This document shows positions 12,756 to 42,810 of a stretch of DNA of 64,000 bases, in pieces. The DNA lies in the NCBI GenBank assembly GCA_010909165.1, contig MU008210.1, positions 248,001 through 312,000 on the forward strand, given 5' to 3'. Source of the stretch: Anthoceros angustus (taxonomy: Eukaryota; Plantae; Anthocerotophyta). The notes below the pieces were generated by a model, which did no database searches, was not told where the DNA came from, and worked only from the letters and a program-made list of their open reading frames with translations. A program made the translations under genes and the position numbers. Position 1 is the stretch's first letter; each line of letters starts with the position of its first letter.

Positions 12756-12762
12756 GTGGGAG

Positions 12763-18000: not shown

Positions 18001-20200
18001 TGCCCTAGCTTTCCCTTGCATGCACAAGCTCTTCCTCGCGATTCCTCGCAGGCTTCCTAGGTGCCACTCCCTACACACCCAGCTCGCATGGCCCTTTGGT
18101 AGTGACAGTGAAACTAGCCCGTTGATTCCTTGCCATGTGGCACCATTTCCACCATCCTCTATTTAGCAGCCCTATCTGTTAAAAGCACCCTACACTACGT
18201 ACCCTACATATTTATATTCTATTATTCCTAATATATCCTATTTATCCACAACCTTGCATATACAATCCTTTTAACAACTTCCTAGGTTGGAACACCTAAT
18301 ATGGAAAGCTTGCTTCCCAAGGTATCCAAGTAGGGTGTCGCACCCCACTTCCACTTGCGTGAGTCCTCACCACTCCTTATGGTAGGAAGACCTCTCATCC
18401 TACCTACCTATCTCCCCAACTACCGTCCGTGAGCCCCGCCACCCTCGTCCTATCTATGTATGGTCACCCTTATCATCCTAAGCCTCATCTATGTAGGCCC
18501 TTGCCACCCTACGCCTCATCTATGTAGGGTCACCCTTGCCACCCTCGTCTCATCTATGTAGGGTCACCCTTGCCACCCTACATACTATCTACCAAAAGAG
18601 CCTCTCCGTCCACATGTAGGCGCTCCCCTACTTACTCCCTCGTGTAGGGACACGGTGTCGTCTTACCCACATACATACATGCAGGGACCCATGACCTATC
18701 TATGTAGGGTCACCTTTGTCACCCTACGTCTCATCTTTGTAGGACTAGCTTTTGACACTCTAGGCGGCTTAAACATGTCCATGGCCTTCTTAAGCAGCTC
18801 ATGACAATTCCTATTCTCCTTTTCTCTTCTCCTTCTCCTCAACCTTCCTTTCAAGCTCCATGATTGCAATCCCTCTTGACCTCCTCATTTGGCCTTCCAT
18901 GTACATCGGATGTGTTGGGTTGTCACCCTACGCCTCATCTATGTATGGTCACCCTTGCATCCCTATTTTCCAGTTCCTCAAGTTCTGCCGTGGCATGTTG
19001 AAATTATAAAGCATTCCTCTATCATCTCCAAGTTGACGTAGGCCCAATGCCATACACCCATTGCAATTGTATGTTGGGCTCTCCAAATGAATGCCACCAA
19101 ATGCCTAGCCTCCACATGCGGGAAGCAATTCCTTCACACACAACTTCTTATGCACGCACACCTCCTTCTCCTTGCATGCACAGCGTTCTCACCGAGTCCT
19201 TGCCCTAGCTTTCCCTTGCATGCACAAGCTCTTCCTCGCGATTCCTCGCAGGCTTCCTAGGTGCCACTCCCTACACACCCAGCTCGCATGGCCCTTTGGT
19301 AGTGACAGTGAAACTAGCCCGTTGATTCCTTGCCATGTGGCACCATTTCCACCATCCTCTATTTAGCAGCCCTATCTGTTAAAAGCACCCTACACTACGT
19401 ACCCTACATATTTATGTTCTATTATTCCTAATATATCCTATTTATCCACAACCTTGCATATACAGTCCTTTTTAACAACTTCCTAGGTTGGAACCTACCT
19501 AATATGGAAAGCTTGCTTCCCAAGGTATCCAAGTAGGGTGTCGCACCCCACTTCCACTGCCCACGTAGGGAGTCCTCACCACTCCTTATGGTAGGAAGAC
19601 CTCTCATCCTACCTACCTATCTCCCCAACTACCGTCCGTAGGGAGCCCCTGCCACCCTACGTCCTATCTATGTATGGTCACCCTTATCATCCTAAGCCTC
19701 ATCTATGTAGGCCCTTGCCACCCTCGCCTCATCTATGTAGGGTCACCCTTGCCACCCTCGTCTCATCTATGTAGGGTCACCCTTGCCACCCTACATACTA
19801 TCTACCAAAAGAGCCTCTCCGTCCACATGTAGGCGCTCCCCTACTTACTCCCTCGTGTAGGGACACGGTGTCGTCTTACCCACATACATACATGCAGGGA
19901 CCCATGACCTATCTATGTAAGGTCACCTTTGTCACCCTACGCCTCGTCTATGTAGGGCTAGCTTTTGACACTCTACGCATTGGCTTAAACTGTCCATGTA
20001 GGGAGCTCCTCTCCATTCTTGTAGGGCCAGCTACCACCTTACACCTACCCCTCGTAGGGTGCACCTCCCTATGGTAGGGAGTACCATGTCCTATATCTAT
20101 AGGATAACATACCCTTCCTACCCATCTTTCCCTTGTGTAGGGGCTGCCTGCCACATCATTCACACTCGCTTCCTCCTATATGCAACTCCTTCCTCCATGC
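17930..20200 (-). repeat. Gypsy family A 3' internal non-coding region, duplicated (~17930-18750 vs ~19150-19960), with ~30-32 bp tandem units TCATCTATGTAGGGTCACCCTTGCCACCCT
   Basis: Directly visible; homologous to 59.7-61.8 kb and, inverted, to 45.3-45.9 kb. Confidence 0.85.
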
Positions 20201-21274: not shown

Positions 21275-24200
21275 CTAACCTCTTGAATGAGGAGCAGCCC
21301 AAGTTTTAAAGTTGGCATGCCCTCGAGGCGTTAGGATGCAGATCCGTCTCCTCTTCCTCCTCGTTGTATTTTTCCTCAATGGCTTCCGGAGGTTGTTGTA
21401 GTAAGTGGCCACTCTGCAACTTTCCCTCTTTTGTGTGTCCATGATTGACTTGTAGTGGGTTGACGCGTTCTTTCCACTCAACCATATCGCCACCTTCGTT
21501 CGGTCTCTCTTCGATCTCCGCCCTTTCCGGTTCAAGGTGAGCTTCCCAATCTCTTCATCTTTTGCTTGGCTTGTCACCAAGCGCTTCACCGCCGTGGCTC
21601 TAGCTTGTTCTTCCACGAGAGCTTGTCGCCTTTAGGGTGTGTCGAACCGTCAGCACTTCCTTCCTACAATTCCTTGCCTCCGTCCCGTAGGCATTGGCAA
21701 GGTGGTTTGATTGCTATCGCTGCTGGTCCAGGAGTTCCCTTGTGATGCGGAGCTCCTCCCTAAGTCCTCTAGCCACGTTGTCCCATTCCTGTTTCTCACT
21801 TGCTAGGCCATCAGATTTCCCTTTATAGTATTCCTTTCACTTGTCCATGGCCAGCAATCTCTTTTGTAGGAGGTCCTTCTCATCTTCAAGGTCCTTTCAG
21901 GCCTTGCTAGCTGTGGTAGTGGCTGCCTCCTTTTCTCGATTCACTTCTCCTACCCTTTCTAGTGCCGCTCTCAAACGCTCTTCCGCCTGACTCTTGGCGG
22001 CTTCCATCTCCTCAGCCTTCTTGGTTAAACTGGCTTCCCTCCCCAAGACTTGGTCTATCATTTCCCACACATTCATCAACTTCGTGGTGAGTCTATCTCG
22101 CTCTTTGGCCAAGTCCACGACAGAGTGTTGCTTCTCGGAGGTTCTCTTCAGAGCTCCCATGAGCTTCTTGTCCACATCATCCAACTCCTTCTTCACATCC
22201 CGAAGTTCAGCACGAACTTCAGCCGCTTCCCTCAAACTTTCTACCAGGGCATCTACTAGCTCTAGTCCAATCTCCTACAGCTCGGTAACCATTCTCCGAA
22301 AGATTCCGTGCTCTCATCACACCTCCCTCGCTCCTCTTCCTCCTCGTTGTATTTTTCCTCAATGGCTTCCGGAGGTTGTTGTAGTAAGTGGCCACTCTGC
22401 AACTTTCCCTCTTTGTGTGTCCATGATTGACTTGTAGTGGGTTGACGCGTTCTTTCCACTCAACCATATCGCCACCTTCGTTCTGTCTCTCTTCGATCTC
22501 CGCCCTTTCCGGTTCAAGGTGAGCTTCCCAATCTCTTCATCTTTTGCTTGGCTTGTCACCAAGCGCTTCCTTCTTGTGGCTCTAGCTTGTTCTTCCACGA
22601 GAGCTTGTCGCCTTTAGGGTGTGTCGAACCGTCGGCACTTCCTTCCTGCAGTTCCTTGCCTCTGTCCCGTAGGCATTAGCAAGGTGGTTCGATTGCTGTC
22701 GCTGCTGGTCCAGAGTTCCCTCGTGATGCGGAGCTCCTCCCTGAGTCCTCTAGCCACATTGTCCCATTCCTGCTTCTCACTTGCTAGGCCATTAGATTTC
22801 CCTTTGTATATTCCTTTCGCTTGTCCATGGCCAGCAATCTCTTCTGTAGAAGGTCCTTCTCATCTTCAAGGTCCTTTCGGGCCTTGCTAGCTGTGGTAGT
22901 AGCTGCCTCCTTCTCCCTGTTCACTTCTCCTACCCTTTCCAGGGCCGTTCTCAAATGTTCTTCTGCCTCATTCTTGGCGGCTTCCATCTCCTCGGCCTTC
23001 TTGGTTAAACCGGCTTCCCTCCCCAAGACTTGGTCTATCATTTCCACACATTCATCAACTTTGTGGTGAGTCTATCTCGCTCTTTGGCCAAGTCCACGAC
23101 AGAGTGTTGCTTCTCGGAGGTTCTCTTCAGAGCTCCCATGAGCTTCTTGTCCACATCATCCAACTCCTTCTTCACATCCCGAAGTTCAGCACGAACTTCA
23201 GCCGCTTCCCTCAAACTTTCTACCAGGGCATCTACTAGCTCTAGTCCAATCTCCTACAGCTCGGTAACCATTCTCTGAAAGATTCCACGTGCTCTCATCA
23301 CACCTCCTACTGCTCCTCTTGCTGGTGCGTAGGTCACCAACATTCCTCGGCGGTCTTCCTTGTCGCCCTCTACTCCCATGGCGACAAGCCCGTCCTGTCC
23401 TCCTTTGGTAGGAGCTTGTTCTCCTACTGTAGGTCCCTCTTCTGCTGTAGCTCCTCCCGTAGGAGCTACTTCCTTCGTAGGTAGTCCGGTTTCTACCGGG
23501 CCATCCCCTGCTGGTGGTGACTGCCTACCAATGTGAAGCCCCATGGTAGGTGGTCAGGAGTCCTTTCCTACCTTCTCCGTAGGAGGCGCCATAGCTCCTT
23601 CTCCTTCCCTTGTCGTTCTTGGTTCACGATCCACGAGGCTTCATCTTTGGTGGGGTGGGGTGGTGGTCTCTTTCCAGATGGTCGACTGTCTACCTCCTCC
23701 TGGTCCTCTGCTGCCATGGACGGCTCTCCTTCCACCACTCGGACCAAGGAAGCTTCTATCTTAGCTTCCTCCAGTTCCTCCTCCTTTAGAACTTCCTCCC
23801 TATGGTATAGATGCACTAGGAAGGTGGAGACAAAACTGATTTTGGCCTCCTCACTCATCAAATGATTCCTATGAGCCACCACCTGCTCATAGAGAATGCT
23901 TGCCCAATCTACCAACTTGCCCTTGGACATCTCATAGATCATCATAAGGTGGGAATTGCCTATGTAGGTCTTCCTAGCGGCACAGATCAATCCCAGCCAA
24001 ATCTTGGCGAAGAGATTCCACTTCCTCTCCTTGAACATGGAAACTCGCCAACCATTACCAGGAGACCAAACTCCTCCTTGGGTCGTAGGAACATATCCAT
24101 GGTCGCTTTCAAAATCTGATTCTTGGAAAACTGGGCCGATGGGATGATTCCTCCTTTGTGCGCCTCGGGTATCAAGTACGTTTGCTGGAAATGGCGCACC

Positions 24201-26700
24201 TTCCACGTTCTAGGATGACTTCAGACTGTGACGTCCTCGGGCACCCTGGCCTCCGCTCTTGTGGCTCGCAACCACCGCGCACACTCCTCAGCATGGATGG
24301 ATTCAGACACCACCTAGCACCCACTCGCCTCTTCCTCAGCTTGCAGCTCTCTAAGCTCGCGCCTTCTTGCACAGAGCCTCCGCGCTCAGCTCGCTTCGCG
24401 CCGCAGTCGCCTCCTTCAGAAAAGTCACAAGCCTCCTCACGCCTTCGTCGTTCTTGCTCCAGAAACATGGGTGGTTCCCTTCTCCTCTCCTGAAATCGCT
24501 AGACCGTCCTCTTTCATCATAAAACTCCTTCTTCCATTTCGCTCAGCGTCTTCCCCTCTTGCTCGAAACATGGGTGGTTCCTTCTCCTTCCGTTTACTTC
24601 CCAAACGACCAAACCACAGCTTCGAGGGTTTTGCAGTGCTGATTTTAGTAGGGATTTCTCAATTCACGCGATGTCCGCCACGTGGCACCATCGATGGTGC
24701 TTCCATTCAAAACTTGATTTGCTATATCGCCTTTAGCATATATAGTCCTCCTCACTCCTCTTGCTCGATTTGAGGACCAAGGAAGTTGCCTTCCTTGCTC
24801 TTGAAATAATCGCTCAACTTTCCTACCAAGGCCAAGGGTCACCTACCGCATCCTCACGAGGATCAAGGTACTTTTCCTACCACGACCTACCAAGGTCCAA
24901 GGACTTTTGCTTATAAAACTAAGTACATTTGTTAGCCTCGAGTTTCAAGGGTTAGTACCCTATTGGAAAAATTCAAAGTCCCATTCCTACTACACCTCCC
25001 ATCGCTCCTCTTGCTGGTGCGTAGGTCACCAACATTCCTCGGTCTTCCTTGTCGCCTCTACTCCCATGGCGACAAGCCCGTCTGTCCTCCTTTAGAACTT
25101 CCTCCTTCGGTAGGAGCTTGTTCTCCTACTGTAGGTCCTTCTTCTGCTGTAGCTCCTCCCGTAGGAGCTACTTCCTTCGTAGGTAGTCCGGTTTCTACCG
25201 GGCCATCCCCTGCTGGTGGTGACTGCCTACCAATGTGAAGCCCCATGGTAGGTGGTCGGGAGTCCTTTCCTACCTTCTCCGTAGGAGGCGCCATAGCTCC
25301 TTCTCCTTCCCCTTGTCGTTCTTGGTTCCTGATCCTGAGGCTTCATGCTGGTGGGCTGGGGGTGGTGGTCTCTTTCCAGATGGTCGACTGCCTCCTTTAG
25401 AACTTCCTCCTCCTTTGGTAGGAGCTTGTTCTCCTCTCCTTCCACCACTCGGACCAAGGAAGCTTCTATCTTAGCTTCCTCCTCCTCCTTTAGAACTCCT
25501 CCCTATGGTATAGATGCACTAGGAAGGTGGAGACAAACTGATTTTGGCCTCCTCACTCATCAAATGATTCCTATGAGCCACCACCGCTCATAGAGAATGC
25601 TTGCCCAATCTACCAACTTGCCCTTGGACATCTCATAGATCATCATAAGGTGGGAATTGCCTATGTAGGTCTTCCTAGCGCAGATCAATCCCAGCCAAAT
25701 CTTGGCGAAGAGATTCCACTTCCTCTCCTTGAACATGGAAACTCGCCAACCATTACCAGGAGACCAAACTTCCTCCTTGGGTCGTTGGAACATATCCATG
25801 GTCGCTTTCAAAATCTGATTCTTGGAAAACTGGGCCGATGGGATGATTCCTCCTTTGTGCGCCTCGGGTATCAAGTACGCTTTGGAAATGGCGCACCTTC
25901 CACGTTCTAGGATGACTTGACCGTGACGCCCCTCGGGCACCGGCCTCCGCTCTTGTGGCTCGCAACCGCGCACACTCCTCGGCATGGATGGATTCGGACA
26001 CCACCTAGCACCCACTCGCCTCTTCCTCGACTTGCAGCTCTCTAAGCTCGCGCCTTCTTGGTTCACGATCCTGCTACACTGGTCAACAACCTCCTACCTA
26101 GATGACCAAACTTCCTCCTTTAGAAAAGTCACAAGCCTCCTCACGCCTTCGTCGTTCTTGCTCCAGAAACATGGGTGGTTCCCTTCTCCTCTCCTGAAAT
26201 CGCACCTCGACCGTCCTCTTTCATGCGCAAAACTCCCTTCTTCCAGCTCACGCTCGCAAGCGTCTTCCCCCTCTTGCTCGCGGCTGCCGTCTCCTTCCGT
26301 TTACTTCCCAAAACGACCAAACCCTGGCTTACTGAGGGTTTTGCCAGTACATGCAGATTTTAGTAGGGATTTCTCCAGTTGCGGCCCACCGCGATGTCCG
26401 CCACGTGGCACCATCGATGGTGCTTCCATTCAAAACTTGATTTGCTATATCGCCTTTAGCATATATAGTCCTCCTCCTTTAGAAAAGTCACAAGCCTCCT
26501 CACTCATCACATTTTGCATGACCAAGGAAGTTGCCTTCCTTGCTCTTGAAATAATCGCTCAACTTTCCTACCAAGGCCAAGGGTCACCTACCGCATCCTC
26601 CGAGGATCAAGGTACTTTTCCTACCACGACCTACCAAGGTCCAAGGACTTTTGCTTATAAAACTAAGTACATTTGTTAGCCTCGAGTTTCAAGGGTTAGT
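21275..26700 (-). pseudogene. Diverged extra-ORF subfamily (conserved block plus long coiled coil), present as overlapping duplicated segments
   Basis: ORFs 23568..24206 and 25560..26066 read KWNLFAKIWLGLI...KTYIG...IYEMSKGKLVDWASILYE...SFVSTFLVHLYH. Coiled-coil ORFs 21897..22235 and 22784..23047 are duplicates. Confidence 0.75.
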
Positions 26701-27184
26701 ACCCTATTGGAAAAATTCAAAGTCCCATTCCTACTACCGACCTCCCAACATCCTACCACCGTATATGACGTCTCGAATCACGATCCTGCTACACTGGTCA
26801 ACAACCTCCTACCTGTCGACTTTCCTATATCCTACCTAGATGACCAAACTTTTCACTCCACACCGCCACATGTCACCCTATGGCACTAGGACATGTGAGC
26901 ATGTTGGGTTTCAAAATTCAAACTATAATTAAATAATCAAGGATCATTAATCATAATTTATTATTGAAAATTATTTAAAGTGACAAGAATTTCTTCAATC
27001 AATCTAAATTATTTTTAATATTATATAATGTATTCGGACTACTCAAATAACTCAAACTACTTTTTGATTTGTCTTTCATGTTTGAAACTTTACAATTTGG
27101 TTGGATAATGTTGGCTTTGTGGGAGGAGCCATTACCCCTTACCATCCTTAGCGCTATGTAAACTTAGCATCCTCGACATCGCCT

Positions 27185-27329: not shown

Positions 27330-28943
27330 TTCACCACATCCTTGTGCCTCAACTTGTCAAAACGTAGTGTGATGTTTGACTCATCACATTTTGCATGACC
27401 AAATCCAAGGGCATTCCACATTCGACATCCTTTTGTGGCCATCGATAAAACGCGCATCTTTCAACTCGCGGATCTTGCACACATGTCCCACACCAGCGAT
27501 TGGCAACAAAAAGTTAGTAGGCTGCGCATTCGAGCCTGACAAATGCATAGGGTTTGAAGGGCAGCATTAAAGATTCAGCAGCTCTCAACTCGAGCTCGAC
27601 AAGGATGGCTTGGGACCGATCGCGATCTCGTCACGCCAAATTGTTCACTTTTTCTTTTGGTCCTTCACCGAGGTGGAGCTCCGGCTTAGTGGATGAGTGC
27701 ATCAAGCTCGGTTGATCGAGAATCGGCGGATCGAAGGTAATCAAACATATACTGCCGGTGCATTATACATCGAGGCTCGAACTTCACCCCACTAACGTGG
27801 TGAAGTACAAAATGTTGAACCGCCATCCGCGCGGCTACTACTTGCACACTCCGGTAGCGGTGGGACTGCCAACCCGGTCGGCTCAGATTCAGCACAGGCA
27901 ACTCCCTGTACGTCTTGGTCACTAGATTGAAAATGCAAGAATCTAGTGATACCATTGGATCCTCCCCATCCCGCGGACTTGTCTCAGCGACAACAATGTA
28001 GCCGTCACCTGTGGCTGCTGCGAACACGGTGTCGGGAACCCACAAGGCACTCCGCCTCAAGCTCAGATCGCAGCACCAAAATAAATCGCAATATCTCCGT
28101 GGAAGGAAGGACAAATCCATCTCCGACGGCCCTTGAGCTCCTAGGCCTCTCTTCAGCAGCTCTCAACTCGGTAGCTCGACAAGGATGGCTTGGGACCGAT
28201 CGCGATCTCGTCACGCCAAATTGTTCACTTTTTCTTTTGGTCCTTCACCGAGGTGGAGCTCCGGCTTAGTGGATGGGGTGCATCAAGCTCGGTTGATCGA
28301 ATCGGCCTCGCGATCGAAGGTAATCAAACATATGCCCGCCAGTGCATTATACATCGAGGCTCGAACTTCACCCCACTAACGTGGTGAAGTACAAAATGTT
28401 GAACCGCCATCCGCGGCTACTACTTGCACACTCCGGTAGCGGTGGGACGCCAACCCGGTCGGCTCGATTCAAGAGGCAACTCCTGCGTCTTGGTCACTAG
28501 ATTGAAAATGCAAGAATCTAGTGATACCATTGGATCCTCCCATCCAGCGGACTGTCTCGGCGACAACAATGTAGCCGTCACACCGCTGCTGCGAACGTGG
28601 TGTCGGGAACCCACAAGGCACTCCGCCTCAAGCTCAGATCGCAGCACCAAAATAAATCGCAATATCTCCGTGGAAGGAAGGACAAATCCATCTCCGACGG
28701 CCCTTGAGCTCCTAGGCCTCTCTTCAACAGGGCGCGCTCCACAACGCACATTGTAGCAGGACCTGACTCCACATCCTGATCATTAAATTTTGCAGCATGC
28801 TCCTCCAAGAAAAGAGGCGACCTCATGTACGTGTACCACCGTCTACACGCATGCTCGAAGCGAAATGCGCTTGCCAATGGCAGAGAGGACAGCACTTCGC
28901 CCACAACGTCGTCAGGGAGGTTCTCCCACAATGTTGCGTCCAT
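27330..28943 (-). pseudogene. F-box protein with FBA/kelch-like C-terminal region, disrupted by an internal ~600 bp duplication and frameshifts
   Basis: N-terminus LWENLPDDVVGEVLSSLPLASAFRFEHACRRWYTYMRSPLF is an F-box. Downstream MDLSFLP and CIFNLVTKTYRELP are typical of plant F-box-associated domains. ~27590-28170 is repeated at ~28180-28730. The 3' end is approximate. Confidence 0.85.
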
Positions 28944-29799: not shown

Positions 29800-32730
29800 C
29801 AGTCTGGCAAAACCTCGAAACCTTTGTTTCGAGGTTAACATCTGCTCGTTCTGCGTCCATGGATTACCTTGGCTCCTTGACGACACCGCTTCTTCCAACC
29901 AGTGACCTTATGGTGAGTTTTCACTCAGCCCTTTGTTTTCCCGACTCTAGTCTTCTACCTTCGCTCCCTCCTTGCCTCTTCACCTCAAGCATCCATCCCT
30001 ATTGTTCCTGCTCGAGAGGGGGAAGATGAACAGGCCATTGTTGATCCTTATGAAAACAGAGAAGACTTTGGTGCTCTTAATCCACAAGACCCAGAGACTG
30101 TTCCTGCTCCACCTTCTCCTGTAATACTTGATCCAGCCCCCGAGCGAAGATATCCTTCGCGTCATCGTCAACCGAGACACCTCTGGAATGAGATCCCCTT
30201 TGATTTAGAGTTCAATCAAGCTGGCTACACCACCACTGCTGTAGGTCATTTCAACGCCTTCAGTGTTGCCCCTTCAGAGGGAGATCCTCTCACTCTTCAA
30301 GAGGCATATTCGCGACCTGATGCAGCTAAGTGGAAGTTCGCTATTGATGATGAATATAATTCTCTTATCAAAAACAATACTTGGACTCTAGTAAACTTGC
30401 CTAAAGGCAGAACTACTGTCAAATGCAAGTGGGTTCTCAAAACTAAATTCCAGGAGGTTGAACCTCGTATTCGCTATAAGGCGAGACTAGTGGCTAAGGG
30501 TTATAGTCAGAAAGAGGGAGTGGACTATCAGGGCGATAAGGTTTATTCACATGTAGTCAAAAGCTTGAGAATGCTCATGGCTTTATGTGCCGAGCTTAAT
30601 CTGGAAATTTATCAGCTTGACATTTGTATTGCTTTCCTTTATGGTCATCTGCAAGAAGAGATCTATATGGATCAACCAGAAGACTATGAAGATGAGCAAT
30701 ACCCAAACAAGGTGTGTAAACTTATTCGTTCTATTTACGGACTAAAGCAAAGCCCACGTTTATGGTATGAGAGAATGGACTCTTACCTCAAGAAGATAGG
30801 TTTTATCCAAAGTGAAGCAGACACCAATATCTATGTACTCCGCAAGGACAGCTCCCTTGTGCTGGTTGCACTATATGTTGATGACTTAGTTATTCCTGGC
30901 AACAATATTGAACTAGTTAACAAGATTAAAGCTGACCTTAGTAAAGAATTCGAGATGAAGGATCTCGGCAAAGTTAAATATATTCTTGGTATGCATGTAC
31001 ATAGAGATACCACGGTGCTATCTATCTCCATCAAGGAAGATATGTGGTATGTTAAAACACTTTAATTTGGAGAATGCGTCGGCCACAGGCCGTGGGTGTT
31101 AAGCTTTCATCGCTACATCCACAATCGAGCAGGAAAAGAAAGAGATGGAAAATATTCCTTATCATATGGGAGTTGGTACTCTCATGTTCTTGAGTAATCA
31201 GACCGGACGATATCTCAAATCATAAATGCTATTGCTCGGTTCTCGAGAATCCGAGGAAAGGATCACGGGTTGCTCTCAAGCGCATCATGCGGTACCTCAA
31301 GGGTACTCCAAATTATGGCCTCTGCTTCAAGCCTAGCGGAAAGAAGCATCTCTTGACATGCTTTGTCGATGCATTGGGCTTGACACGAAAAAGTATCTCA
31401 GCATATTGCTTTCTTGCTGGCTCCACTGTTGTTAATTGGTCTTGTAGAAACAAGCTGCAATATCACTTTCATCAACAGAATCGGAGTACAAAGCACTCAC
31501 TGAAGCCACGAAAGAGGCTGAATGGGAAAGAAAGCTATGTGAAGATTTGGATATGAAGCGGGAAGAATAGCTTAATTGTGACAATATGTCAGCCATTGCT
31601 CTTGTCGCTAATCCGGTCTTTCATGCGCGCACGAAGCATATTGAGATTCAACACCATTATATTCGTGACGCTGTTGAGAGAGGAATTGTTAAGGTATAGT
31701 ATGTACCCACAGATGACAATACAACAGATATACTGACAAAATCCTTGCCGAAGTTCAAACACTGCTTCCACAGAGAAGGGCTTGGATTGGTTGGTATGTG
31801 ACTTTTGCACTTGGACCAATCACACATTTGGTGAGGCGCATCTTATCTCGAGCGTTCGATTACTTGAAGTTGTGACTATTGTAGACCGCTTCAATTTGGA
31901 GAATGCGTGCGGCGCCACACAGCCGTGGGTGTTAAGCTTTCATCTGCTACCTATCCACAATCAGAACAGGAAAAGAAAGAGATGGAAAATATTCCTTATC
32001 GTATGGGAGTTGGTACTCTCATGTTCTTGAGTAATCAGACCAGACCTGATATCTCAAATACTGTAAATGCTATTGCTCAGTTCTCAGAGAATCCAGGAAA
32101 GGATCACTGGGTTGCTCTCAAGCGCATCATGCGGTACCTCAAGGGTACTCCAAATTATGGCCTCTGCTTCAAGCCTAGCGGAAAGAAGCATCTGCTACTG
32201 ACATGCTTTGTCGATGCAGATTGGGCTTCAGACGCTGACACCCGAAAAAGTATCTCAGCATATTGCTTTCTTCTTGGCTCCCATTGTTAATTGGTCTTGT
32301 AGAAAACAAGCTGCAATATCACTTTCATCAACAGACTCGGAGTACAAAGCACTCACTAAAGCCACGAAAGAGGCTGAATAGGAAAGAAAGCTATGTGAAG
32401 ATTTGGATATGAAGCAGGAAGGGCCAACATTGCTTTATTGCGACAATATGTCAGCCATTGCTCTTGTCGCTAATCCTGTCTTTCATGCGCGCACGAAGCA
32501 TATTGAGATTCAACACCATTATATTCGTGACGCTGCTGAGAGAGGAATTGTTAAGGTACAGTATGTACCGACAGACGACAATACAAGATATCGACAAAAT
32601 CCTTGCGAAGTTCAAACACGCTTCCACGAGAAGGGCTTGGATTGGTTGGTATGTGACTTTTGCACTTGGACCAATCACACATTTGGTGAGGCGATCTTAT
32701 CTCGAGCGTTCGATTACTTGAAGTTGTGAC
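29800..32730 (+). pseudogene. Ty1/copia pol (integrase tail, RT, RNase H) with duplicated RNase H segment
   Basis: DPLTLQEA...[91 protein letters not shown]. ~31060-31880 is repeated at ~31880-32730. Confidence 0.95.
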
Positions 32731-32876
32731 TATTGTAGACCGCTTGCTTCAATCTTACTTGCGGCCGGTGATCGGTGAGTTGAGTTTAGTTGAAGACCGT
32801 AGTACTCATACAATACTCCAGTGACAAATGATTATTAGTTCTTTGATTTAGATAACCCAACTAGTATGAGAGGGAG

Positions 32877-33067
32877 AGTTAGAAGTACATACCGCGTTGG
32901 TTATGGTTAGCTTAGCTTAACCAAGCGTGGTCATACCCTTTGGTATCTTGTACCGAAGAGGTACAACTCTTCATACACAGGCTATAAAAGCCCACCTCTT
33001 GTAATCAATTGTATCAATTAGTAAGCACTAAACTTTGATCAAACGCTTCCGCAAAGCACCTCAAACT
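32877..33067 (+). mobile_element. Copia 3' LTR, ~191 bp, non-canonical termini AGTT...AACT, preceded by PPT GAGAGGGAG
   Basis: The PPT lies ~140 bp after pol; TATA-like CTATAAAAG is inside; inverted copies at 41058-41241 define the same ends. Confidence 0.85.
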
Positions 33068-33373
33068 CTGGGCGCCCGTGGTGGACTCCTTTCCGCTGAG
33101 GCATGGCCTACAGTTGTGTTGTGTCGTTGTAGGTCGGGAGTTGGTGAATTTTGAAGCAGTGCAAGTGGTGCAGCTGCTGTAGAGGGAGAGTTAGAGGGCG
33201 CCTTGCTTGTTGAGGGGGGTGAGGTTGTGAATGGGTGAAGGCAACGATTGATCTCTTAGAATCCGGCTATCCACACAAGTCTCATGGGATGAAACCCAAC
33301 GTACTGAGCGACAGTGGAATAAGTGTGGCCACTAGAGGGTGAATCTCGGAAGCCCTAGGATTTTCCTCCCACA
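33068..33373 (+). mobile_element. 3' end of gypsy LTR family A, interrupted by the copia
   Basis: Ends ...TTTTCCTCCCACA like the copies ending at 8696 and 47925. Confidence 0.85.
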
Positions 33374-34184
33374 TAATCATCACTTGCTCAAAGTATCTCT
33401 AGCATTAAGCAGATAAACAAAAGTACAAGTGTTTATAAAGTCTAGGTAGTTACTGGTAGTTGTAACCAAAATAACCAATTAGCTAAAAATGAGTGACTAC
33501 TTCTAGCCCCAGGATTTAATTAAATATTAATCTAGACACTTCTAGGTGCCCTAATAAATAGTGTCCAAATTATCTTAATATTTCATCAAATTCCAGGATG
33601 TTGAAGTCCATGATCGAGATTTGAGAAACCGCTATCGAGAATTACACCTTCGAACAACTATATATGTAACATACTGGGATTGAATAATTAGAGCATTCGC
33701 AAGCAAAGCTCTATTTAGGGTTTTGTTTTGCATCACTGCACCGAATCTGCAGCACATTTGAGGGCACATTTGAGGGCACGGCATGGGGGTGAGCGCAACT
33801 TCCTAGCACTTAGTGGTTTAGGAACAGAGGACTTGCACGCGAAGGCCTCCGATCGCGAGGTCTTTCACGCGAAGGCAACCCACAAGCGGGGCAGCCAGAA
33901 TTGCAGCGGCGCACCAAGCCTGGTTCGAGCATCAATGTTCCGCAAAGGTATGCAGCTTTCAACGCTACAGTCTCACATGGAGCATGTCGGTTTGGAAACC
34001 CTGTTGGGTTTGAAACCTTGACATGTTTTGAAACCGAGATACGGTTTCAAAACCCTTTCAAGTTTTGAAACCGAGATATGGTTTTGAAATGGCATACACT
34101 CTTGTTGTAATCAGTCTTTTGCTCGTGTTTACGATTTTGTAATCAGTCTTATGCCCTCATCCTTGTTTGCTTTGCGCTTCCACC

Positions 34185-37100
34185 ATGGCACGCTCCCAAC
34201 AGCGGAAGAAAGTTTGGTTTGAAGCGGCTTTTGGGGCTGGGGCACAAAATCAGAACAATCCTACGCTTCATCCCGACGTGACCTTGCGCAAAGGAAGTTG
34301 AGGAAAAGCGCGTGAAGGCCACCAAGTCCAAAGAGCATCCGCGGCGAACCAATCCTTAGTGCCTCAAGACTAGGACGATTGTGCAAAGGTAAGCAGGCAA
34401 AATCTTTGTGGCTTCCTCTTCGATGGCATGTGCAAATAAGGACTTATGAGGATGCATGTTGGTTGTCCTCTATGGTTGCATCTGGAGACTTCATGCCAAT
34501 GCTTGCGAATGGTGCTGCGTCTGGTGTGCTTGAATTGTCAGTTCAGGGCATCTTCACTCTAATGATCTGTGTAGCAACAATAAAGATTTCAGGGCAGCTC
34601 TTGTTTTGTTTGCTTGTTCGATGCCTTTTACATTTTCCTCCTCCGGCCCTCCCGCTTTGTTAATTAGTAATTCCCACCTAACCTAGTGCCTTGTGCTGCC
34701 GTGGTGACTAAGAACATGGAGATTTTGCCTTGTGCAGATGGTTGGAGGCACACGGAGCAAGGACGTTTTGGTTGTCTCTGATCCTAGAGAAGTAGGCAAG
34801 GTTGGCAAGAGGAAGCGCAACGACGAGCAAGCCAAGACCCGCTCCGCCGATCGCCCAACTGCGGATCCGATTCCAGCAAGCAAGGAGGAGGAGATCAGGT
34901 CCCCTGGCGAGAGTGCTAAATGCAAGAAGGCCTCGAAGTCCACCTCCGTCCCTGGTGGAGGAAGACCCACGAGGCCTAGTGGAGGCGTGGCTATCGATAA
35001 GTCGACTGATCAACACGATGCTAGAGGGAAATCGAGGGAGGAACAATGGCTGGAGGCAAGCCTTCTATAAGTGCAGCAGAAATTGCAGGCCAGTGCAAAG
35101 GAGGTGGACCCAAACCACAAGCTAAGGCTGGGAGCTCTCACTCAAAAGCAAAGCATCAGAATGCTGGCAAGCTTCAATTGAGCGCTCCAACAATTGTGCT
35201 CAAAGATTAACTCACGTTGAGCGGCCTGTGGCCCCCTTCAATCGCAAGCAAAGTGTAATTGTGAAGAAACTGAGAGAGGTTGTCCACTCCAAGGTTCTTT
35301 TGGAGAATGAGTGGCATATTGTTATGCCCACCACCTCGGATGATGAAGATAAGCCTTCCCCTCTCGTGGCGCTTTGGGTGAGTGGATTGGAGGTTGCAAA
35401 TGCCAATCAAGCATTGAGGGCAGGTTGGATAATCTGGGCTTGGCTGTCCACAATTGAGGCAGATATTACAATGGAGATCCTGTGCACGGTGAGGCCGGGA
35501 CTGCCTTTGTGTGACTCCAAAGACGACTATAGGATGCTCGTTTTGACCCTAGATAAAGTGGAAGCACGGCGTTGCCTGCCAACAGATGTGAAGATCAAGC
35601 TCAAGGCCGCCCAGCACGTGGAGGATGTGAGTCCTAACCACTTTTATTTTTCATGCTTGTTTCTTAGACTTTAAAAGGAGGGTGCACAGCCTATGGCGCA
35701 CCCTACTGGGTGCGCCGCCTACCATCGCACCCAAAGGTAGGCTGCGCACCCTCTTTTATTTCTAAATTGTTCATCGGTTTTGAGGAGGGTGCACAGGCCT
35801 ATGGCGCACCCTACGCCAACCTGCCAGCACACCCTGCCTATGGGTTTATGGCTTGCCGGTGCACCCTACCTGTGGGTGCGCCGGTAGGCCGGCACAATGA
35901 GGGTGTGCCGAGGCCGGCGCACCATCGTTATTTTCTTAGTTATCCTTTGGTTTTTTGTAGGGTGGGCTAGCTTACCGAGGAGGGTGCGCAGGGTACCAGC
36001 GCACCCTCCCTCTTGTTTTCTCTCTTTACATCTTGGGATTTGTTTATGGTGAGCGTTACTAGCTGAGTATAGCTTCTAGTTTTGTTCCTAACTTTCATAT
36101 TTCATTCATACCAGAATGGGGAGGTTTTCTATAGCATAATCCTACGGTTCATCGTGGATGGAATCAATGACAGCCCACTTTTGAAGGATGAGGGACAAGG
36201 CATCCAGCGAAGTCTCTTTGCGGACACCATGTCGCAAGCTCTGTTCTTCCAGTTGGTGGGAAGCGGGTGAATTTTTCAGACCAGCTGAACAGTGAAGAGG
36301 ATGTAGCAGATGATCAATCTGGGGACAAGGATGCATCCGAGGAAGATGAGGATGTTGGACAGGCGGAGCAGGTTTCGAATGTTGAGGGGCAGGAAGAGGT
36401 CGAGTTAGAGGATGACTCTCTTGCTCCCGCTAACCTCACTGACCTAGAGGCCACGAGGGAGAGGTTGAATCAGACCTTTGTGGCATATCACCAGGATCTG
36501 AGCCCTTTAGCCCCTAAAGACATGGGCATGAAGGCGCCCGAAACGCAGCAGTGTGGTAAGGGGAAAGGCAATCAGACTGGTGAGGAGAAAGGGAAGCAAA
36601 AGAAAGCAACCAATGAGAAATCACCTAAACAGTCAAAGAAGAAGAAGGTGAAATCTCCTACTATTCTGACCCGACCAATGTCAACGGACGAGGATAGGTT
36701 GCAGCAAGATGTTGTGCAAAAGGATCCCTTGAACCTTCTGCGCGAGAGTGCTAAGAAGAAGAAGATCCAGCCCACAACAGCAATCATCCCTCTTCACTGC
36801 CTGAGGAGTGCGGAATATCTGACCCAAGATGCCATGATCCGAAGAATCGACACCTCCTGGTCCAGCTTCCTCGAGCGGGAGATTCGCAAGGGGCATGTGG
36901 AAGAGGGCGTCTTGCCCATCTTGGTCATGGTGGACCCTCAGCAGTGTCCGACCCGGAAAGGCGGGATGAACTGATGTTTGAGAAGGAAGAGTACACTTTG
37001 GCGTGCTTGGCGGCAACCATTGTTTCAGTGTGAGGAGCCTCACCACCGCAATTCCCAACCTTGCCGCAGACAAGTATATGGAGGGTCACATGTATGTGGC

Positions 37101-39851
37101 TAACACAAGAGAGATGAGGGTGCCGCAATGACCACAATGTGATAGCGGACGGGAGGAAGAAGAAGATGGCGTTCATTGAACAAGTTCGCTATGTGAAAGA
37201 CGAGCTGGAGATCTTGAAGAGCTGTGGCATCTCAAAGCCGTCTTTGACCGGAAGTGGATCTGCAGTTCTTTTGGGGCTTGTGGAGCATGCTAGTCTGCGC
37301 GAGTGTGAAGCAAAAAAAGGTTGACCATAAGACATTGAACTCCGCATTGCAAAGTGCAGTGGTCTGGTTTGGTCAAATGTGAATGAGATATTCACAAGAT
37401 GGGAGAAGTTGGAATTGCCGGAGCAAAAGCACCAAGCTGTGGCTGGGGTGTCTAAACGTGCGAAAGCCCTACGCAAACCTGGACAGCCGGAAGAGCAATC
37501 AGCAAGCGGTGCAGATGCAAGCGGGGACAAAAAAGACATATGTGGCAAGATGTTTAGGTGCTTCCAGGGAGTTCCAGATGGGGAAGTAGGGGAGAAAATG
37601 TTGTTGAGCGCAACGGAAAAAAGTCATCCAGGGGCACTTGGACTTGAAAGGCATGTATACTAGGTGCAACAGAAGAAGCATCTCCACGTAATTCAGACAG
37701 CCATGGCCAAGCACCTAAGTTGCGCAACGTTTGCGGAAGTACAGCAAAAGTATCTGAAGCACGCCAGAGATGATGATGTCGCGAAGTTTCAAAGCTGCTT
37801 TGAGATTGTGGTAAGTTATTGTTCATGCGTTTTGTGCTCCTGCGCGCTGTCGGTGCCCCGGCGATGCACCCTTTGGTTTTTTTGTGCCTTGAGCTTTGGT
37901 TGTGGAGTGCGCCGTTAGGCTGTCGCACTCTTTTGAGGGTGCGCCAGCCTATCGGCACACCCTCTATTTTGTTCTTTCAGTTTTGAGTAGAGTTTGCCGG
38001 TAGGCCGGCCTAGCGACGCACCATCCATTTTATTCTTCATTGTTTTTTTGGTTCTGTGGAGGGTACGCTAGTAGGCCGACGTACCCTCAAAAGAGTGTGC
38101 ACCGGCCTACCGGTGCCCTACCACTGTACCCTCCATTTTCTTTTTTATTTGTTTTTGGTTGTTCGCAGAGTGCGCCGGTAGGCCGGCGCACTGTGCTGTG
38201 GGTGTGCCGGCCTATTGGCGCACACTCCATTTTGTTCTTTCTTTTGCTTTGGATTTGAGCAGAGTGCGCCGACCTATCGGCGCACCCTCTATATATTTCT
38301 TTCTTTTGCTTTGATTTTGAGCAGAGGGCGCCGGCCTACCCTCTCTTTTTTTGCCGGTTTGGTTTTGACAAGAGTACAACGCACTCTGGTGTGGGTTTGC
38401 TGGACTATTGGCGCACCCTTCTTTTTTCTTTTGTCGTTTGCATTGGTTTGCGCCCATAGGCCAGCGCACCCATAGTAGAGTGCGCCAGCCAACTGGCACA
38501 CCCTCCATTTGTGTCGTGTGTTTCGCTTTGGTTTTAGGGTGCTCTTGTTTGCTTTTCTTACGCGTGGAGGTTAAACAATGGTTTCATGGCTGCCTCTATT
38601 CAGAAACCATCGGATGTGAATGTGTTGAAGAACCTTCCCAATATTTTCCAGGACTGGATCTTGGCTGCGAAAGCCTGGAAGAAGATGGAAGTGGAGGCTC
38701 GACAGTTGGCGGAAAGCTCAATAGACAATGAGCTGCAGGAGTTCATTGTCCCTGGTTCGGCGAAAAAAATGAGCTATCAGATTTTCAACAGGCCCATGGA
38801 GGAGTTGCTTGGTTTTGGGCGGAAGAGGAACTACACCCTTCTGATCATGGACCTGCCAAGGGGACATGGCTTGGGTTCAAATGATGCTCAGGTGTTATCT
38901 CCGGACGTTCTTTTGGCAATACTTAATCACTTCATGGAGATCACAACTGCAGAGACATTTCGGGTGGTCGTCCTTCATGGTGCAGATCAGATGGTGGATG
39001 TCCGCGAAGCAATGCGCCGGGGTTGCAAGTCCGGCAAGATGTTGACATTTGTCTGGGAGAAGACTAATGTTAGGGAAGACAATCAGGTGTACAACAACTC
39101 GGATTATATTCGTGGGTTCAGTTTGAAGCCGTGTTGAACTTTCAAGCTGCGCCTGTTGCCTTTGGCATCACATTGGGGTACCAAGGCATGGGTTCCGTGA
39201 TCAAGTGCGACGATTGTGAAGAAGCTGGTGTACTCGGCAATGGATAGGAGAGTGGTTTCTCCGTGCAGCGGAGTGATGTCCACACTCATCCAAACCTTCT
39301 CCATAGGAGGCGGGTTATTGACGGGTTTGCGGGAGTGGCTCGGCGGCTTTGGCTGCCTGGAATGGGAGAAATGTGATAGCGGTGGATTCGGACCACCGTT
39401 GTGCAATGTTCATCACCCAGCGCATAGTCGGCTATCATGCTTTCCCAAACGTCAATGAAGAACTAAATATGCTTCCGTTTAAGCGTGGGAAAGGATCCTT
39501 TTGGCCAAAGGAGATCTGTCTGGGGATGAACCTTATTCCTTGTGGGGTGTCATTGAACATGGTTTCTAAACGCCCGCCCTACCATAGTCTGCTAGTGTTG
39601 GAGGCGGTCAAATCACTCGAATAGGGCTTCGGATGTGCAAGGTGACAAGGATGGCGAGGAAGATGAAGTGAGGCTCCTCCGAGCTGTGGCACCAATGATC
39701 GACTTGGGTGCTGATTTGGACGACTTGGGAATGACAAGGTGGTCGTTCAAAACACAGGACCAAAACATGGAGGATGCTTCGATGCGGACGGGAGAACCCT
39801 TCTTTGTCTGTGGACATACCCATCAAGTATTGCGGGCTTTAGGGTTATCCT
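34185..39851 (+). CDS. Spliced, frameshifted gene: unknown N-terminal domain + ParB/Srx-like domain + beta-class N4-C/N6-A DNA methyltransferase
   Basis: Proposed exons: 34185-34388 (CACCATGG start, donor AAG/GTAAG), 34738-35626 (TGCAG acceptor; donor GAT/GTGAGT), 36115-37810 (CTAAC...CCAG acceptor, phase 0; donor GTG/GTAAGT) and ~38570-39851. ParB-like IIPLHCL...RRIDTSWSSFLEREI...PILVMVD, GVLGGNH (37009-37020) and NDHN (~37130). MTase LLIMDLPRG (38850), LTFVWEK, GVMSTLIQTFS, VIDGFAG (39314), GSAALAAWNGRNVIAVDSD. May be intact or a pseudogene. Confidence 0.8.
35627..36114. repeat. Intron filled with GGCGCAC/GTGCGCC repeats and hairpins
   Basis: For example GGCGCACCC-TACT-GGGTGCGCC at 35695-35716. 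Confidence 0.8.
37811..38569. repeat. Second intron with the same repeat family separated by T-rich linkers
   Basis: For example GTGCGCCGG-TAGG-CCGGCGCAC at 38170-38191. The 3' splice site is uncertain. Confidence 0.75.
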
Positions 39852-40021
39852 AGTTATAAATGAGCAGACCACATTGGTTACCTCTAACTAGGCCTAAGCT
39901 ATTAATGTAGTTACACAACCCTTCGTAATTGTTTAAATGCCCACCTATGATCCAGAAAATTAATTCATTGTTAATATAGCTTCTGTTTGATGCAAGACAC
40001 TTCCGCATGGCACCTCTAACT
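39852..40021 (+). mobile_element. Diverged copia-type 5' LTR, ~170 bp, AGTT...AACT
   Basis: Aligns to the 32877 LTR (GCCCACCT; TTTGAT..A.AC.CTTCCGCA..GCACCTC.AACT) and is directly followed by a PBS. Confidence 0.8.
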
Positions 40022-40033
40022 TGGTATCAGAGC
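40022..40033 (+). promoter_or_regulatory. Primer-binding site for initiator tRNA-Met (TGGTATCAGAGC)
   Basis: Exact canonical plant PBS-Met immediately after the LTR end. Confidence 0.92.
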
Positions 40034-41057
40034 AATGATCCGCCCCGGACTTGCTTGCTATCTCTTTCTTGCTGCTTCTAGTATAGGGAAATAGGAGATA
40101 GCATATCATATTAAATTTGTGATGTTCTTAAGAGTATTATGGACCCTTATGGTCTATGGTTTACGTCTTAGGAATATAAAGATGCAAATGATATGCATAA
40201 GTTCAAGTAAGCAAATTTACAAGATAAGGTTTTCTTCAATAGAGTATTCTCTTAGGTAGATTCAGATGCTAGTCTAATTAGAATTTCTAATCAACAAGAA
40301 ACGTATCTCTCTAGATCTAAAATTCTTCAAGAGCATGTTGAGGCACATTCCCCATCCACGTCCTGATCCGTTCCCTGGACGCTTAATCGTGGAGTTCCCT
40401 TAGAAACCGTGGAACTACCATGCTACTCTTGTAGCTTACATAAACATAGGCTACAAATACACAAGACGGAAAACAACTCTATTTTCGTGATTTCAGGGGT
40501 TGCTGAATATGGGTTTAAGAACCCACCTTTGGGACCTTTGCCCGTATCGCTTCTCCCAATTTGCGACCTTCGCCTTGCTAGATTTCAATCAATTCACAGC
40601 GAGCGGATGGCGTAAATTGACGCTCAAACATAGGATCCAGGCGAAGATTTGATGACCTATAATGCTCCAGAGGGTGTACGCATCCTTGCACCAATCAGCA
40701 GTCTTCTACCACTTTCTTTGGCAGGGCTCAAGCACCCAGAGAAATCCAGTTGCTTTTTAATCTGGCTATCAAGAATTTGTTGGCTCGCTTTCGGCATCAA
40801 GGCTGGTTGGCAGCCCATAGAGCAGCACAATCACCGGATGGCTCTCATTGCATTCCTTACCCTACTGCCCAACCTGTGTTTCCCACATGAGTGGCGCAAC
40901 CGATACTAGCTTGCTGATTTCTCTCTCGGCTTGTTCATTTGGAGGATCCAACCGCCCAATGGGATCTCCCTCCTTACTCAGATACAGAGGAGGACACCTT
41001 CTGGGATGCCCATCCAAGCCTCTGGTGGTTGGAGGACCTTCTTATACAGGAGCATCT

Positions 41058-42525
41058 AGTTTGAGGTGCTTTGCGGAAGCGTTTGATCAAAGTTTAGTGC
41101 TTTACTAATTGATACAATGATTACAAGAGGTGGGCTTTTATAGCCTGTATGAAGAGTTGTACCTCTTGATTACAAGATACCAAAGGGTATGACCACTGGG
41201 TTAAGCTAAGCTAACCATAACCAACGCGTGCACTTCTAACTCTCCTCTCACTAGTTGGGTTATCTAATCAAAGAACTAATAGTCATTTGCTGGAGTATTG
41301 TATAAGTACTACGGTCTTCAACTAAACTCAACTCACCGATCGTCACGGTCACAAGTAAGATTGAAGCAAGCGGTCTACAATAGCTGTCAACTTCAAGTAA
41401 TCGAACGCTCGAGATAAGATCGCCTCACCAAATGTGTGGTGGTCCAGCTCTGATCAACCAATCCAAGCCCTTCTCTGTGGAAGCAGTGTTTGAACTTCGG
41501 CAAGGTTTTTGTCAGTATATCTGCTATATTTTCGTCTGTGGGTACATACTGTACCTTAATAATTCCTCAGCAGCGTCACGAATATAATGGTGTTGAATCT
41601 CAATATGCTTTTGCGGAAGCGTTTGATCAAAGTTTAGTGCTTTACTAATTGATACAATGATTACAAGAGGTGGGCTTTTATAGCCTGTATGAAGAGTTGT
41701 ACCTCTTGATACAAGATACCAAAGGGTATGACCACTGGGTTAAGCTAAGCTAACCATAACCAACGCATGCACTTCTAACTCTCCTCTCACTAGTTGGGTT
41801 ATCTAATCAAAGAACTAATAGTCATTTGCTGGAGTATTGTATAAGTACTACGGTCTTCAATTAAACTCAACTCACCGATCGTCACGGTCACAAGTAAGAT
41901 TGAAGCAAGCGGTCTACAATAGTCAACTTCAAGTAATCGAACGCTCGAGATAAGATCGCCTCACCAAATGTGTGGTGGTCCAATGCAAAAGCTCTGATCA
42001 ACCAATCCAAGCCCTTCTCTGTGGGCAGTGTTTGAACTTCGGCAAGGTTTTTGTCAAGATATCGCTATATTGTTGCGCATACTTTACCTTAATAATTCCT
42101 CAGCGTCACGAATATAATGGTGTTGAATCTCAATATGCTTCGATGCGCGCATGAAAGACCGAATTAGCGACAAGAGCAATGGCGACATATTGTCACAATT
42201 AAGCACTATTGGTCCTTCCTGCTTCATATCCAAATCTTCACATAGCTTTCTTTCCCATTCAGCCTCTTCGTGGCTTGAGTGCTTTGTACTCCGATTACAT
42301 TGATGAAAGTGCAGCTTGTTTTGTACAAGACCAATTAACAAGAGTGGAGCCAGCAAGAAAGCAATATGCTGAGATACTTTTTCGGGTGTCAGCGTCTGAA
42401 GCCCAATCTACATTGACAAAGCATGTCAGTAGCAGATGCTTCTTTGCGCTAGGCTTGTAGCAGAGGCCATACTTTGGAGTACCCTTGAGGTACCGCATGA
42501 TGCACTTGAGAGAAACCCAGTGATC
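41058..42525 (-). mobile_element. Inverted copy of the 30-33 kb copia 3' end (RNase H, PPT, LTR 41058-41241; duplicated partial LTR ~41611-41780)
   Basis: ORF 42295..42675 reads DHWVSLKCIMRYLKGTPKYGLCYKPS...DWASDADTRKSISAY. The LTR is the reverse complement of 32877-33067. Confidence 0.9.
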
Positions 42526-42810
42526 CCCTACTAGAAAAGGGCAGCCTATGTTACACTTTATGTTAAGATTTGGACCCTTGGATATAATCATGTTGCAATT
42601 TTGGGGCCATGTAACACTTTTGGGGCTTGTTACACTTTGGCTTGGAAACCAGACCACGGCTGTTGTTGCAATCATGTTGCAATTATGTTAAGATGAAGTG
42701 AGAGGTGCTTTTGCACTATCTCAAGATTGCAACATGATTGCAACATCTAAAGTGTTACAAGAGAGGTCTCGTAACACTTTTGTAGGCTTGGTACCGAACC
42801 TCCTCCCCAT
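42526..42810 (+). mobile_element. CACTA/EnSpm-like terminus (CCCTACTAGAAAA) with subterminal repeats
   Basis: One mismatch to the CACTACTAGAAAA-type TIR, located where the copia homology stops. It is followed by repeated TGTTACAC and ATCATGTTGCAAT units and a perfect 20 bp inverted repeat (42664-42683 / 42726-42745). No partner TIR was found. Confidence 0.55.

Follow-up and report, generated by a model that had tools for sequence, protein, structure and literature searches.

General features of the locus

The window analysed here is a stretch of 64,000 nucleotides (nt) from Anthoceros angustus (Anthocerotophyta), positions 248,001 to 312,000 of contig MU008210.1 (assembly GCA_010909165.1), and all coordinates refer to it unless another sequence is named. 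Its plus strand carries, between 35.1 and 39.85 kb, a frame-broken gene with introns in which a ParB-like region precedes a domain homologous to DNA amino-methyltransferases. This segment is probably the relic of a transposon passenger gene that has lost both its transposase and its reading frame. An earlier note on the sequence had proposed instead a bacterial gene, joining ParB and methyltransferase parts, that gained introns after settling in a plant. The features of the gene are listed below; relatives are referred to by locus (L) or protein (P) handles.

35126..35626, plus strand: candidate upstream exon or open reading frame (ORF), open in frame 1 and ending at a GTGAGT donor; putative part of the gene
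35627..36114, plus strand: putative intron 1, GTGAGT...CAG, containing palindrome array 1
About 35676-36009: palindrome array 1, in putative intron 1
36115..37810, plus strand: main 5' exon, read in frames 2, (1), 0, 1, 2, 1; homologous to L001, L002, L003, L006 and L007
About 36276-36770, plus strand: acidic and Lys-rich N-terminal region, inside the main 5' exon
About 36786-37216, plus strand: ParB-like core, inside the main 5' exon
36915..37216, plus strand: ParB-like core strings PILVMVD, VLGGNH, NDHN and VRYVKDEL
37217-37810, plus strand: conserved middle domain, inside the main 5' exon
37811..38603, plus strand: intron 2, 793 nt, phase 0, GTAAGT...TTCAG, containing palindrome array 2
37906..38501, no strand assigned: palindrome array 2, in which a 22-nt unit, GTGCGCCGG-TAGG-CCGGCGCAC, occurs about 11 times, in either orientation and in part within tandem units of 62 nt
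38604..39621, plus strand: methyltransferase exon, read in frames 2, 1, 2, 1, 0, from KPSDVNVLKNLP to the stop after KSLE
38850..38864, plus strand: motif IV position, DLPRG and not (D/N/S)PP(Y/F/W)
39252..39302, plus strand: degenerate motif X region, reading VVSPCSGVMSTLIQTFS; relatives read VVSPYQKPxRLxKxLxxxFS
39314..39393, plus strand: motif I and NVIAVDSD, VIDGFAG followed by GSGS with a frameshift at about 39328; relatives read V(I/L)DGCSGSGS
39602..39850, plus strand: possible acidic C-terminal tail, an open stretch in frame 1; putative

Homology to DNA amino-methyltransferases

A coordinate check by frame recovered every motif string quoted in the earlier note, all on the plus strand and at the places it had given:

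36915-36935, plus strand, frame 2: PILVMVD
37003-37020, plus strand, frame 0: VLGGNH
37127-37138, plus strand, frame 1: NDHN
38838-38864, plus strand, frame 2: LLIMDLPRG
39045-39062, plus strand, frame 2: TFVWEK
39270-39302, plus strand, frame 2: GVMSTLIQTFS
39314-39334, plus strand, frame 1: VIDGFAG
39331-39360, plus strand, frame 0: GSGSAALAAW
39370-39393, plus strand, frame 0: NVIAVDSD

The ORF of 183 amino acids (aa) at 38586-39134, which holds both LLIMDLPRG and TFVWEK, had 15 matches with E<1e-3 in an exhaustive phmmer search against 1.84 billion (1.84e9) representative proteins, the best with an E-value of 1e-13. Relatives score well above the gathering threshold of the Pfam family N6_N4_Mtase (PF01555), which is 26.7 bits: P0004 reaches 50.1 bits, P0012 reaches 49.2 bits (profile positions 3-218) and P0006 reaches 47.3 bits. 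They also match DNA methyltransferase families of phages in PHROGs and, weakly, the CcrM-type models of NCBIfam. When the window was searched with relatives by tblastn and tblastx, the matches were collinear from 36675 to 39465, spanning about 2.8 kb and involving seven independent loci; on the methyltransferase exon the tblastn queries were P0001, P0004, P0006, P0009, P0012 and P0014. Window and relatives share one order of motifs: in the window DLPRG (38850) comes first, then the motif X region (39252) and then motif I (39314-39342). This circular permutation, with motif IV ahead of motifs X and I, assigns the gene to the beta class. Since the relatives found by phmmer pass the PF01555 threshold, the homology is real, and by sequence comparison the window gene is a homologue of beta-class N6_N4-type DNA amino-methyltransferases, as the earlier note had held. 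The profile comparison that it had suggested gave a positive result for the homologous relatives, and no piece of the window matched PF01555 by itself.

Resemblance by chance, created by picking frames where there is no gene, would fit the finding that the window pieces alone have no match in Pfam, PHROGs or the feature search of the protein atlas. It is nevertheless refuted by a phmmer E-value of this size against so many proteins, by the collinear matches and by an intron position conserved in relatives (next section). The absence of the gene from the ORF list had been put down to frame changes, and this is borne out by the frameshift-aware alignment, which needs several shifts of the small-indel type.

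Exons and introns

The main 5' exon aligns with the intact 488-aa ORF of L007 with 140 identities in 455 positions, again in a frameshift-aware alignment. Intron 2 falls at the same codon as a 112-nt GTAAGT...CAG intron of L002 (L002 5199-5310). This intron is gone from L003, which is 99.7-100% identical to L002 but lacks three such intron-like segments, and L003 is therefore taken to be a spliced transcript. Because intron 2 shares its codon position with an intron that was removed in L003, there is good, though indirect, evidence for a single spliced gene made up of both the upstream and the methyltransferase parts.

The earlier note had proposed GT-AG introns. The one at 37811-38603 is backed by homology to L002 and L003, and the one at 35627-36114 has splice signals only. 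At the phase-0 join 35626/36115 these signals are good (GAT/GTGAGT ... ACCAG/AAT, the slashes marking the splice sites), but hhalign finds no significant similarity between the window's upstream ORF and the one conserved in the relatives (P=0.016, probability 2.9%). An upstream ORF is present on the same spliced transcript in L003. In the window the upstream stretch 35126..35626 is multi-copy, judged from X1, a set of DNA short-read unitigs that covers only three short parts of the locus. At the other end of the gene, acidic tails are present in relatives, and the putative tail at 39602..39850 gave no significant alignment.

The transcribed copy L003 is itself damaged: frameshifts and an in-frame stop lie where one half of its methyltransferase domain gives way to the other. 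As it is broken yet spliced, decayed copies are also transcribed and spliced in that organism.

Methyltransferase motifs

Motif IV reads D-L-P-R, with Arg at the aromatic position, in the window and in all five of its nearest relatives (P0001, P0002, P0003, P0004 and P0006). These carriers of DLPRG are only about 30-35% identical to the window, and the tree groups them with it (support 88/85); the sister clade has D[IV]P[YF]G. The presence of Arg throughout the clade suggests a changed mechanism or a pseudo-enzyme, and not random decay.

Motif X is in a different state. Its YQKP is gone, the window reading SPCSG against SPYQKP in all relatives, and the region is three residues shorter. Motif I, the S-adenosylmethionine (AdoMet)-binding motif of the FxGxG type, is present and split by a frameshift; tblastn aligns 36 aa of its region to P0004 with 55.6% identity. 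The earlier proposal that the gene may write N4-methylcytosine (4mC) or N6-methyladenine (6mA) is unlikely to hold for this copy, which is frame-broken and has lost motif X. Even for the intact relatives such writing could not safely be assumed, because their motif IV, DLPR, also lacks the aromatic residue.

The ParB-like region

The core strings of the window align with VVML, YVLGGNHS, TDHNS and VRYIRHE of L007, P0023 and P0022, and the window pieces are 28-52% identical to the intact core of L007. The same core occurs at 9475-9786 of the Riccia locus L018. Proteins of the ParB type show a strand (hPhhV), then a Gly-rich G-x-H/R-R box, then a helix. Across the present family LPILVMV ... VLGGNH(C/S) is kept, the VLGGNH(C/S) segment being a candidate ParB box, and the Arg after the His is absent.

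No ParB signal was obtained in Pfam, PHROGs, NCBIfam, two profile searches of the PDB or tblastn against phages. Comparison by hhalign with a Burkholderia plasmid protein annotated as ParB/RepB/Spo0J, which itself has only a weak HTH_ParB match in Pfam and no ParB_N, gave a probability of 0.08%. Two AlphaFold2 runs on the region, with alignments of 11 and 9 rows, had a predicted local distance difference test (pLDDT) of 46-47, so the Foldseek output was meaningless. Scanning metagenomes for ParB-like peptide patterns brought no confirmed relative. On these results the ParB/Srx assignment made in the earlier note is not confirmed. The sole pointer to ParB comes from the language-model features of the atlas: the intact L007 domain scored 0.97 with a eukaryotic cluster, the model of which superposes on ParB_N families with a template modelling (TM) score of 0.58-0.65, and the same search gave 0.95-0.96 for DUF3723 clusters, 0.92 for a ParB_N cluster and 0.90 for DUF6551. 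The label ParB-like is thus plausible but unproven.

Relatives and their transposases

The annotated relatives are KAL3677677 of the liverwort Riccia sorocarpa and Chara braunii GBG86584. The others are P0012, a protein from ENA, and contigs from public runs, with at least seven distinct loci from SRR33208241/42. Word-indexed protein searches with P0001, P0017 and the ParB-like region of L007 returned only paralogues, from one sequencing project. On the basis of these sequences the gene belongs to a streptophyte family with multiple copies.

In two relatives the gene has a transposase as its neighbour. L007 carries a 619-aa ORF with a match to Pfam DUF7869 (1.7e-49), oriented head-to-head with the gene, and the model of the best-matching DUF7869 cluster in the atlas resembles ISAzo13/DDE_3 transposases. 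On Riccia sorocarpa chromosome CM100800.1 (L018) a 903-aa DUF7869 gene, 39% identical to the L007 ORF, lies on the minus strand and is followed by the ParB-like core (E 1e-10) and then by the methyltransferase. Because a DUF7869 transposase of the DDE type stands divergent beside the gene in these two relatives, the family may be regarded as a passenger gene of a DDE cut-and-paste transposon. A lone bacterial gene settled in a plant, as the earlier note pictured it, is at odds with a multi-copy streptophyte family found beside such transposases.

Two further observations concern these loci. At L018 the annotation divides positions 7907-11922 of the locus between a 330-aa gene and a 453-aa 'DNA methylase N-4/N-6 domain' protein, and the ParB-like core at 9475-9786 lies unannotated between the two gene models. 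The 16-kb contig of L002 (logan SRR33208241_14892), which also has a frame-broken, transcribed copy of the gene, carries ORFs for a Peptidase_C48 (Ulp1-like) protein and a RecQ-type helicase at 11918-12892 and 15394-15961; genes of both kinds are often captured by large plant DNA transposons.

Direct horizontal transfer of a bacterial or phage ParB-methyltransferase gene, which then gained introns and now serves as a host 4mC/6mA writer like Marchantia DN4MT1 or rotifer N4CMT, has to be weighed against this picture. The fold family is indeed of prokaryotic or phage type: the N6_N4 enzymes of PF01555 (CcrM-type, phrog_67/498) share the order of motif IV before X and I, phage and plasmid methyltransferases match the block of motifs X and I at 35-54% identity over 50-80 aa, the CcrM models match weakly, and a spliceosomal intron is present. 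The prokaryotic matches, however, cover only the C-terminal quarter of the domain, and the nearest relatives are all eukaryotic, multi-copy and beside transposases. Motif IV is (D/N/S)PP(Y/F/W) in the prokaryotic and phage enzymes, against DLPR here and D[IV]P[YF] in the sister clade, and the window family has spliceosomal introns and additional N-terminal and middle domains. A ParB fusion was sought in the eight phage and plasmid methyltransferases that were fetched; all eight are stand-alone proteins of 214-323 aa without ParB. The likeness to the Marchantia enzymes is that of a prokaryote-type amino-methyltransferase in a bryophyte-grade plant. MpDN4MT1a/b are sperm 4mC methyltransferases of late spermiogenesis, with 4mC activity in vivo and the motif TSPPY (bioRxiv 10.1101/2021.02.12.428880). 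Compared by description, they differ from the window gene in being host genes with TSPPY in place of DLPR and with no mention of a ParB-like part. Since the window copy is, in addition, frame-broken, direct transfer is very improbable, and the transposon passenger gene is kept as the preferred explanation.

Palindrome arrays

GC-rich palindromes are confined to the two (putative) introns of the gene. At up to five mismatches, the unit GTGCGCCGG-TAGG-CCGGCGCAC has 12 sites in the window, all within the two arrays, and all seven window copies of GGGTGCGCC lie inside array 1 or array 2. The pattern TGCGCC-N(4-16)-GGCGCA has two matches against 0.01 expected. Palindromes of the same design occur in the homologous intron of L006 and L007, with TGCACAGGAYRTCCTGTGCA and GCACCGGTCAACCGGTGC each present twice, and one palindrome site of the window has the same arms as L007. 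The count of the shared pattern across loci is not an independent statistic, because the pattern was derived after the fact.

These arrays suggest how intact members of the family might work. Their N-terminal domain would bind the palindromes of the element itself (half-site GCRCMGG, 4-nt spacer), and the methyltransferase domain would then methylate this DNA or merely hold it. For the transposon the outcome could be self-recognition, self-marking or protection, as the algal papers discussed below propose. The window copy would no longer make such a protein. A wider proposal is that streptophyte transposons carry an old ParB-like/amino-methyltransferase clade with motif IV D-L-P-R, which recognises the palindromes in its own introns, GCRCMGG-N4-CCKGYGC, with a half-site shared between lineages, and whose methyltransferase is either an enzyme with an unprecedented motif IV or an AdoMet-binding pseudo-enzyme; put in this full form it is speculative, and we consider it rather unlikely. 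Under it the D-L-P-R change, kept between proteins only about 30% identical, was probably selected.

A second, unrelated palindrome array lies at 5497-7033, with a 10-nt periodicity and the sequences GGTGGGTGACCACCTACC and CACCTACCACGGTGGGTG. It has no linked gene and sits in a tandemly duplicated block (5113-5886 against 6138-6920).

Genomic setting of the copy

The gene lies in a segment of 8 kb, 33068-41057, with the end of a Copia fragment on either side:

30397..33067, plus strand: Copia fragment with RVT_2 (Pfam 3.2e-59), internally duplicated; its end abuts the gene segment at 33067
41058..42526, minus strand: Copia fragment of the same family, inverted; its end abuts the segment at 41058

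The two ends, 33023-33067 and 41058-41102, are 100% complementary. Inverted repeats of 1.5-2 kb (31.1-33.1 kb and 41.1-42.5 kb) were considered as terminal inverted repeats and rejected, since they contain Copia coding sequence for reverse transcriptase and RNase H. The two Copia fragments are the sole long inverted repeats around the gene, and neither terminal inverted repeats nor a target-site duplication were found. No DUF7869 or other matching transposase was detected in the 64-kb window with the L007 and Riccia transposases as queries.

The X1 set contains 65 unitigs that map to three parts of the locus, and these parts are therefore multi-copy. X1 unitig depth rises to about 116 at 39849-40000, just past the gene, so that a high-copy repeat starts about where the gene ends. 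Elsewhere in the window an integrase ORF (rve, H2C2) was found at 1279-1848.

Frame breaks: decay or assembly error

Frameshift-aware alignment places four frameshifts (36973, 37118, 37254 and 37337) and a stop (36979) in the 5' exon. The break between REM and NDHN is not an intron, because the relative L001 reads straight through it. The methyltransferase exon has three to five frameshifts, near 39133, 39146-39213 and 39328 and as a pair around 39303-39334 that puts VIDGFAG in a frame of its own. The total is at least seven breaks. With these, with motif X (YQKP) lost and with no transposase, this copy is unlikely, from its sequence, to be active any longer.

The quality of the assembly has to be considered here. 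The window contains immediate head-to-tail duplications of 0.4-1.8 kb, 89-97% identical, in which small indels are about as many as mismatches:

12538-15871: immediate duplication
15938-17343: immediate duplication
17557-19998: immediate duplication
21348-23320: immediate duplication
23300-26747: immediate duplication
27574-28730: immediate duplication
31060-32745: immediate duplication
41067-42140: immediate duplication

They look like an artefact of noisy long-read assembly rather than biology, and as they suggest such noise, every frameshift in the window is suspect.

Several points weigh against a decayed transposon passenger gene. The immediate tandem duplicates differ by indel events about as often as by mismatches, and at the listed sites where X1 unitigs differ from the window there are 11 substitutions and 27 indels, mostly of 1-2 nt. 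As the assembly is rich in small indel errors, some or all of the breaks could be artefacts and the copy could be intact. Membership in a transposon is known by homology only, since neither a transposase nor terminal inverted repeats nor a target-site duplication turned up here. No profile, hhalign or structure test confirmed the ParB fold, and with DLPR at motif IV methyltransferase activity is doubtful even in the intact relatives. A search of RNA runs for the locus listed no run.

The main rival holds that the gene is intact and kept by the host, as a domesticated or 'stranded' transposon gene that is expressed, spliced and functional, and that the frameshifts are errors of the long-read assembly. 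The dominance of indels among the differences within the assembly and against X1 agrees with it, as do the long open stretches of 260 and 199 codons that survive, the conservation of DLPRG, GSGS and NVIAVDSD and the intact splice signals. The distribution of the damage speaks against it: the 7-9 breaks cluster in the most conserved cores, where about 170 nt of the ParB-like core contain three of them and about 30 nt of motif I contain two, and motif X is replaced and three residues shorter, which is beyond what one indel explains. Of the X1 differences, those listed at 39420 and 39497 would probably run the alternative frame into a stop and leave the reading unrepaired. The copy also sits between two Copia insertions, and the empty result of the RNA-run search tells against an expressed gene as well. 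An intact host gene is, on balance, unlikely. The relic of a transposon passenger gene, with its transposase and frame lost, remains the probable identity of the segment.

Comparison with published passenger genes

The closest description in the literature is that of Sola1-1_Ec32 of Ectocarpus, a cut-and-paste transposon with an accessory gene opposite its transposase (Genome Biol 2025, PMC12477816). The accessory protein, 1104 aa long, combines a ParB-like domain with a 4mC/6mA methyltransferase domain, and the authors suggest that its target, for both binding and modification, is the element that carries it (PMC12477816). The divergent layout of gene and transposase is also that of the relatives L007 and Riccia L018. 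The differences are a brown algal host and, in the window copy, the lack of a transposase and the motif IV DLPR; the two were likened by description and not by sequence. The transposase of the plant relatives is characterised as DUF7869 with DDE-like structural neighbours, whereas the superfamily name Sola1 is the label of the Ectocarpus paper (PMC12477816). That paper also cites Iyer, Abhiman and Aravind (2011), on eukaryotic ParB-fused N6A methylases, for similar green algal transposon proteins (PMC12477816).

In the red alga Bostrychia moritziana the Plavaka passenger genes PAG2 and PAG3 have N6-adenine methylase and ParB-like domains, and tandem inverted-repeat arrays adjoin the ParB-like gene (bioRxiv 10.1101/2025.02.11.637652). 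The palindrome arrays of the window resemble these, here inside the introns of the gene. In Bostrychia, however, the methylase and ParB-like domains belong to different proteins, in which they are fused to SET and 2-oxoglutarate (2OG)-oxygenase domains, and the element is a red algal Plavaka. Transposon passenger genes with ParB-like and DNA methyltransferase domains have thus already been published, and the window holds a further, probably dead, copy.

Significance

By itself this copy adds little, being without a transposase, probably dead and placed in an error-prone assembly. The wider proposal of a streptophyte clade that recognises its own palindromes would, if true, amount to an as yet undescribed system by which transposons of land plants mark themselves. 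The conserved Arg at the aromatic site of motif IV poses a clean biochemical question, that of an active variant against a pseudo-enzyme. If the intact members are active, plant transposons would carry a 6mA/4mC writer of their own, aimed at their own DNA. Such members would bear on the dispute over the existence and importance of 6mA and 4mC in plants, and they would be candidates, beyond DN4MT1, for the methylation signals other than 5-methylcytosine (5mC) in bryophyte-grade genomes.

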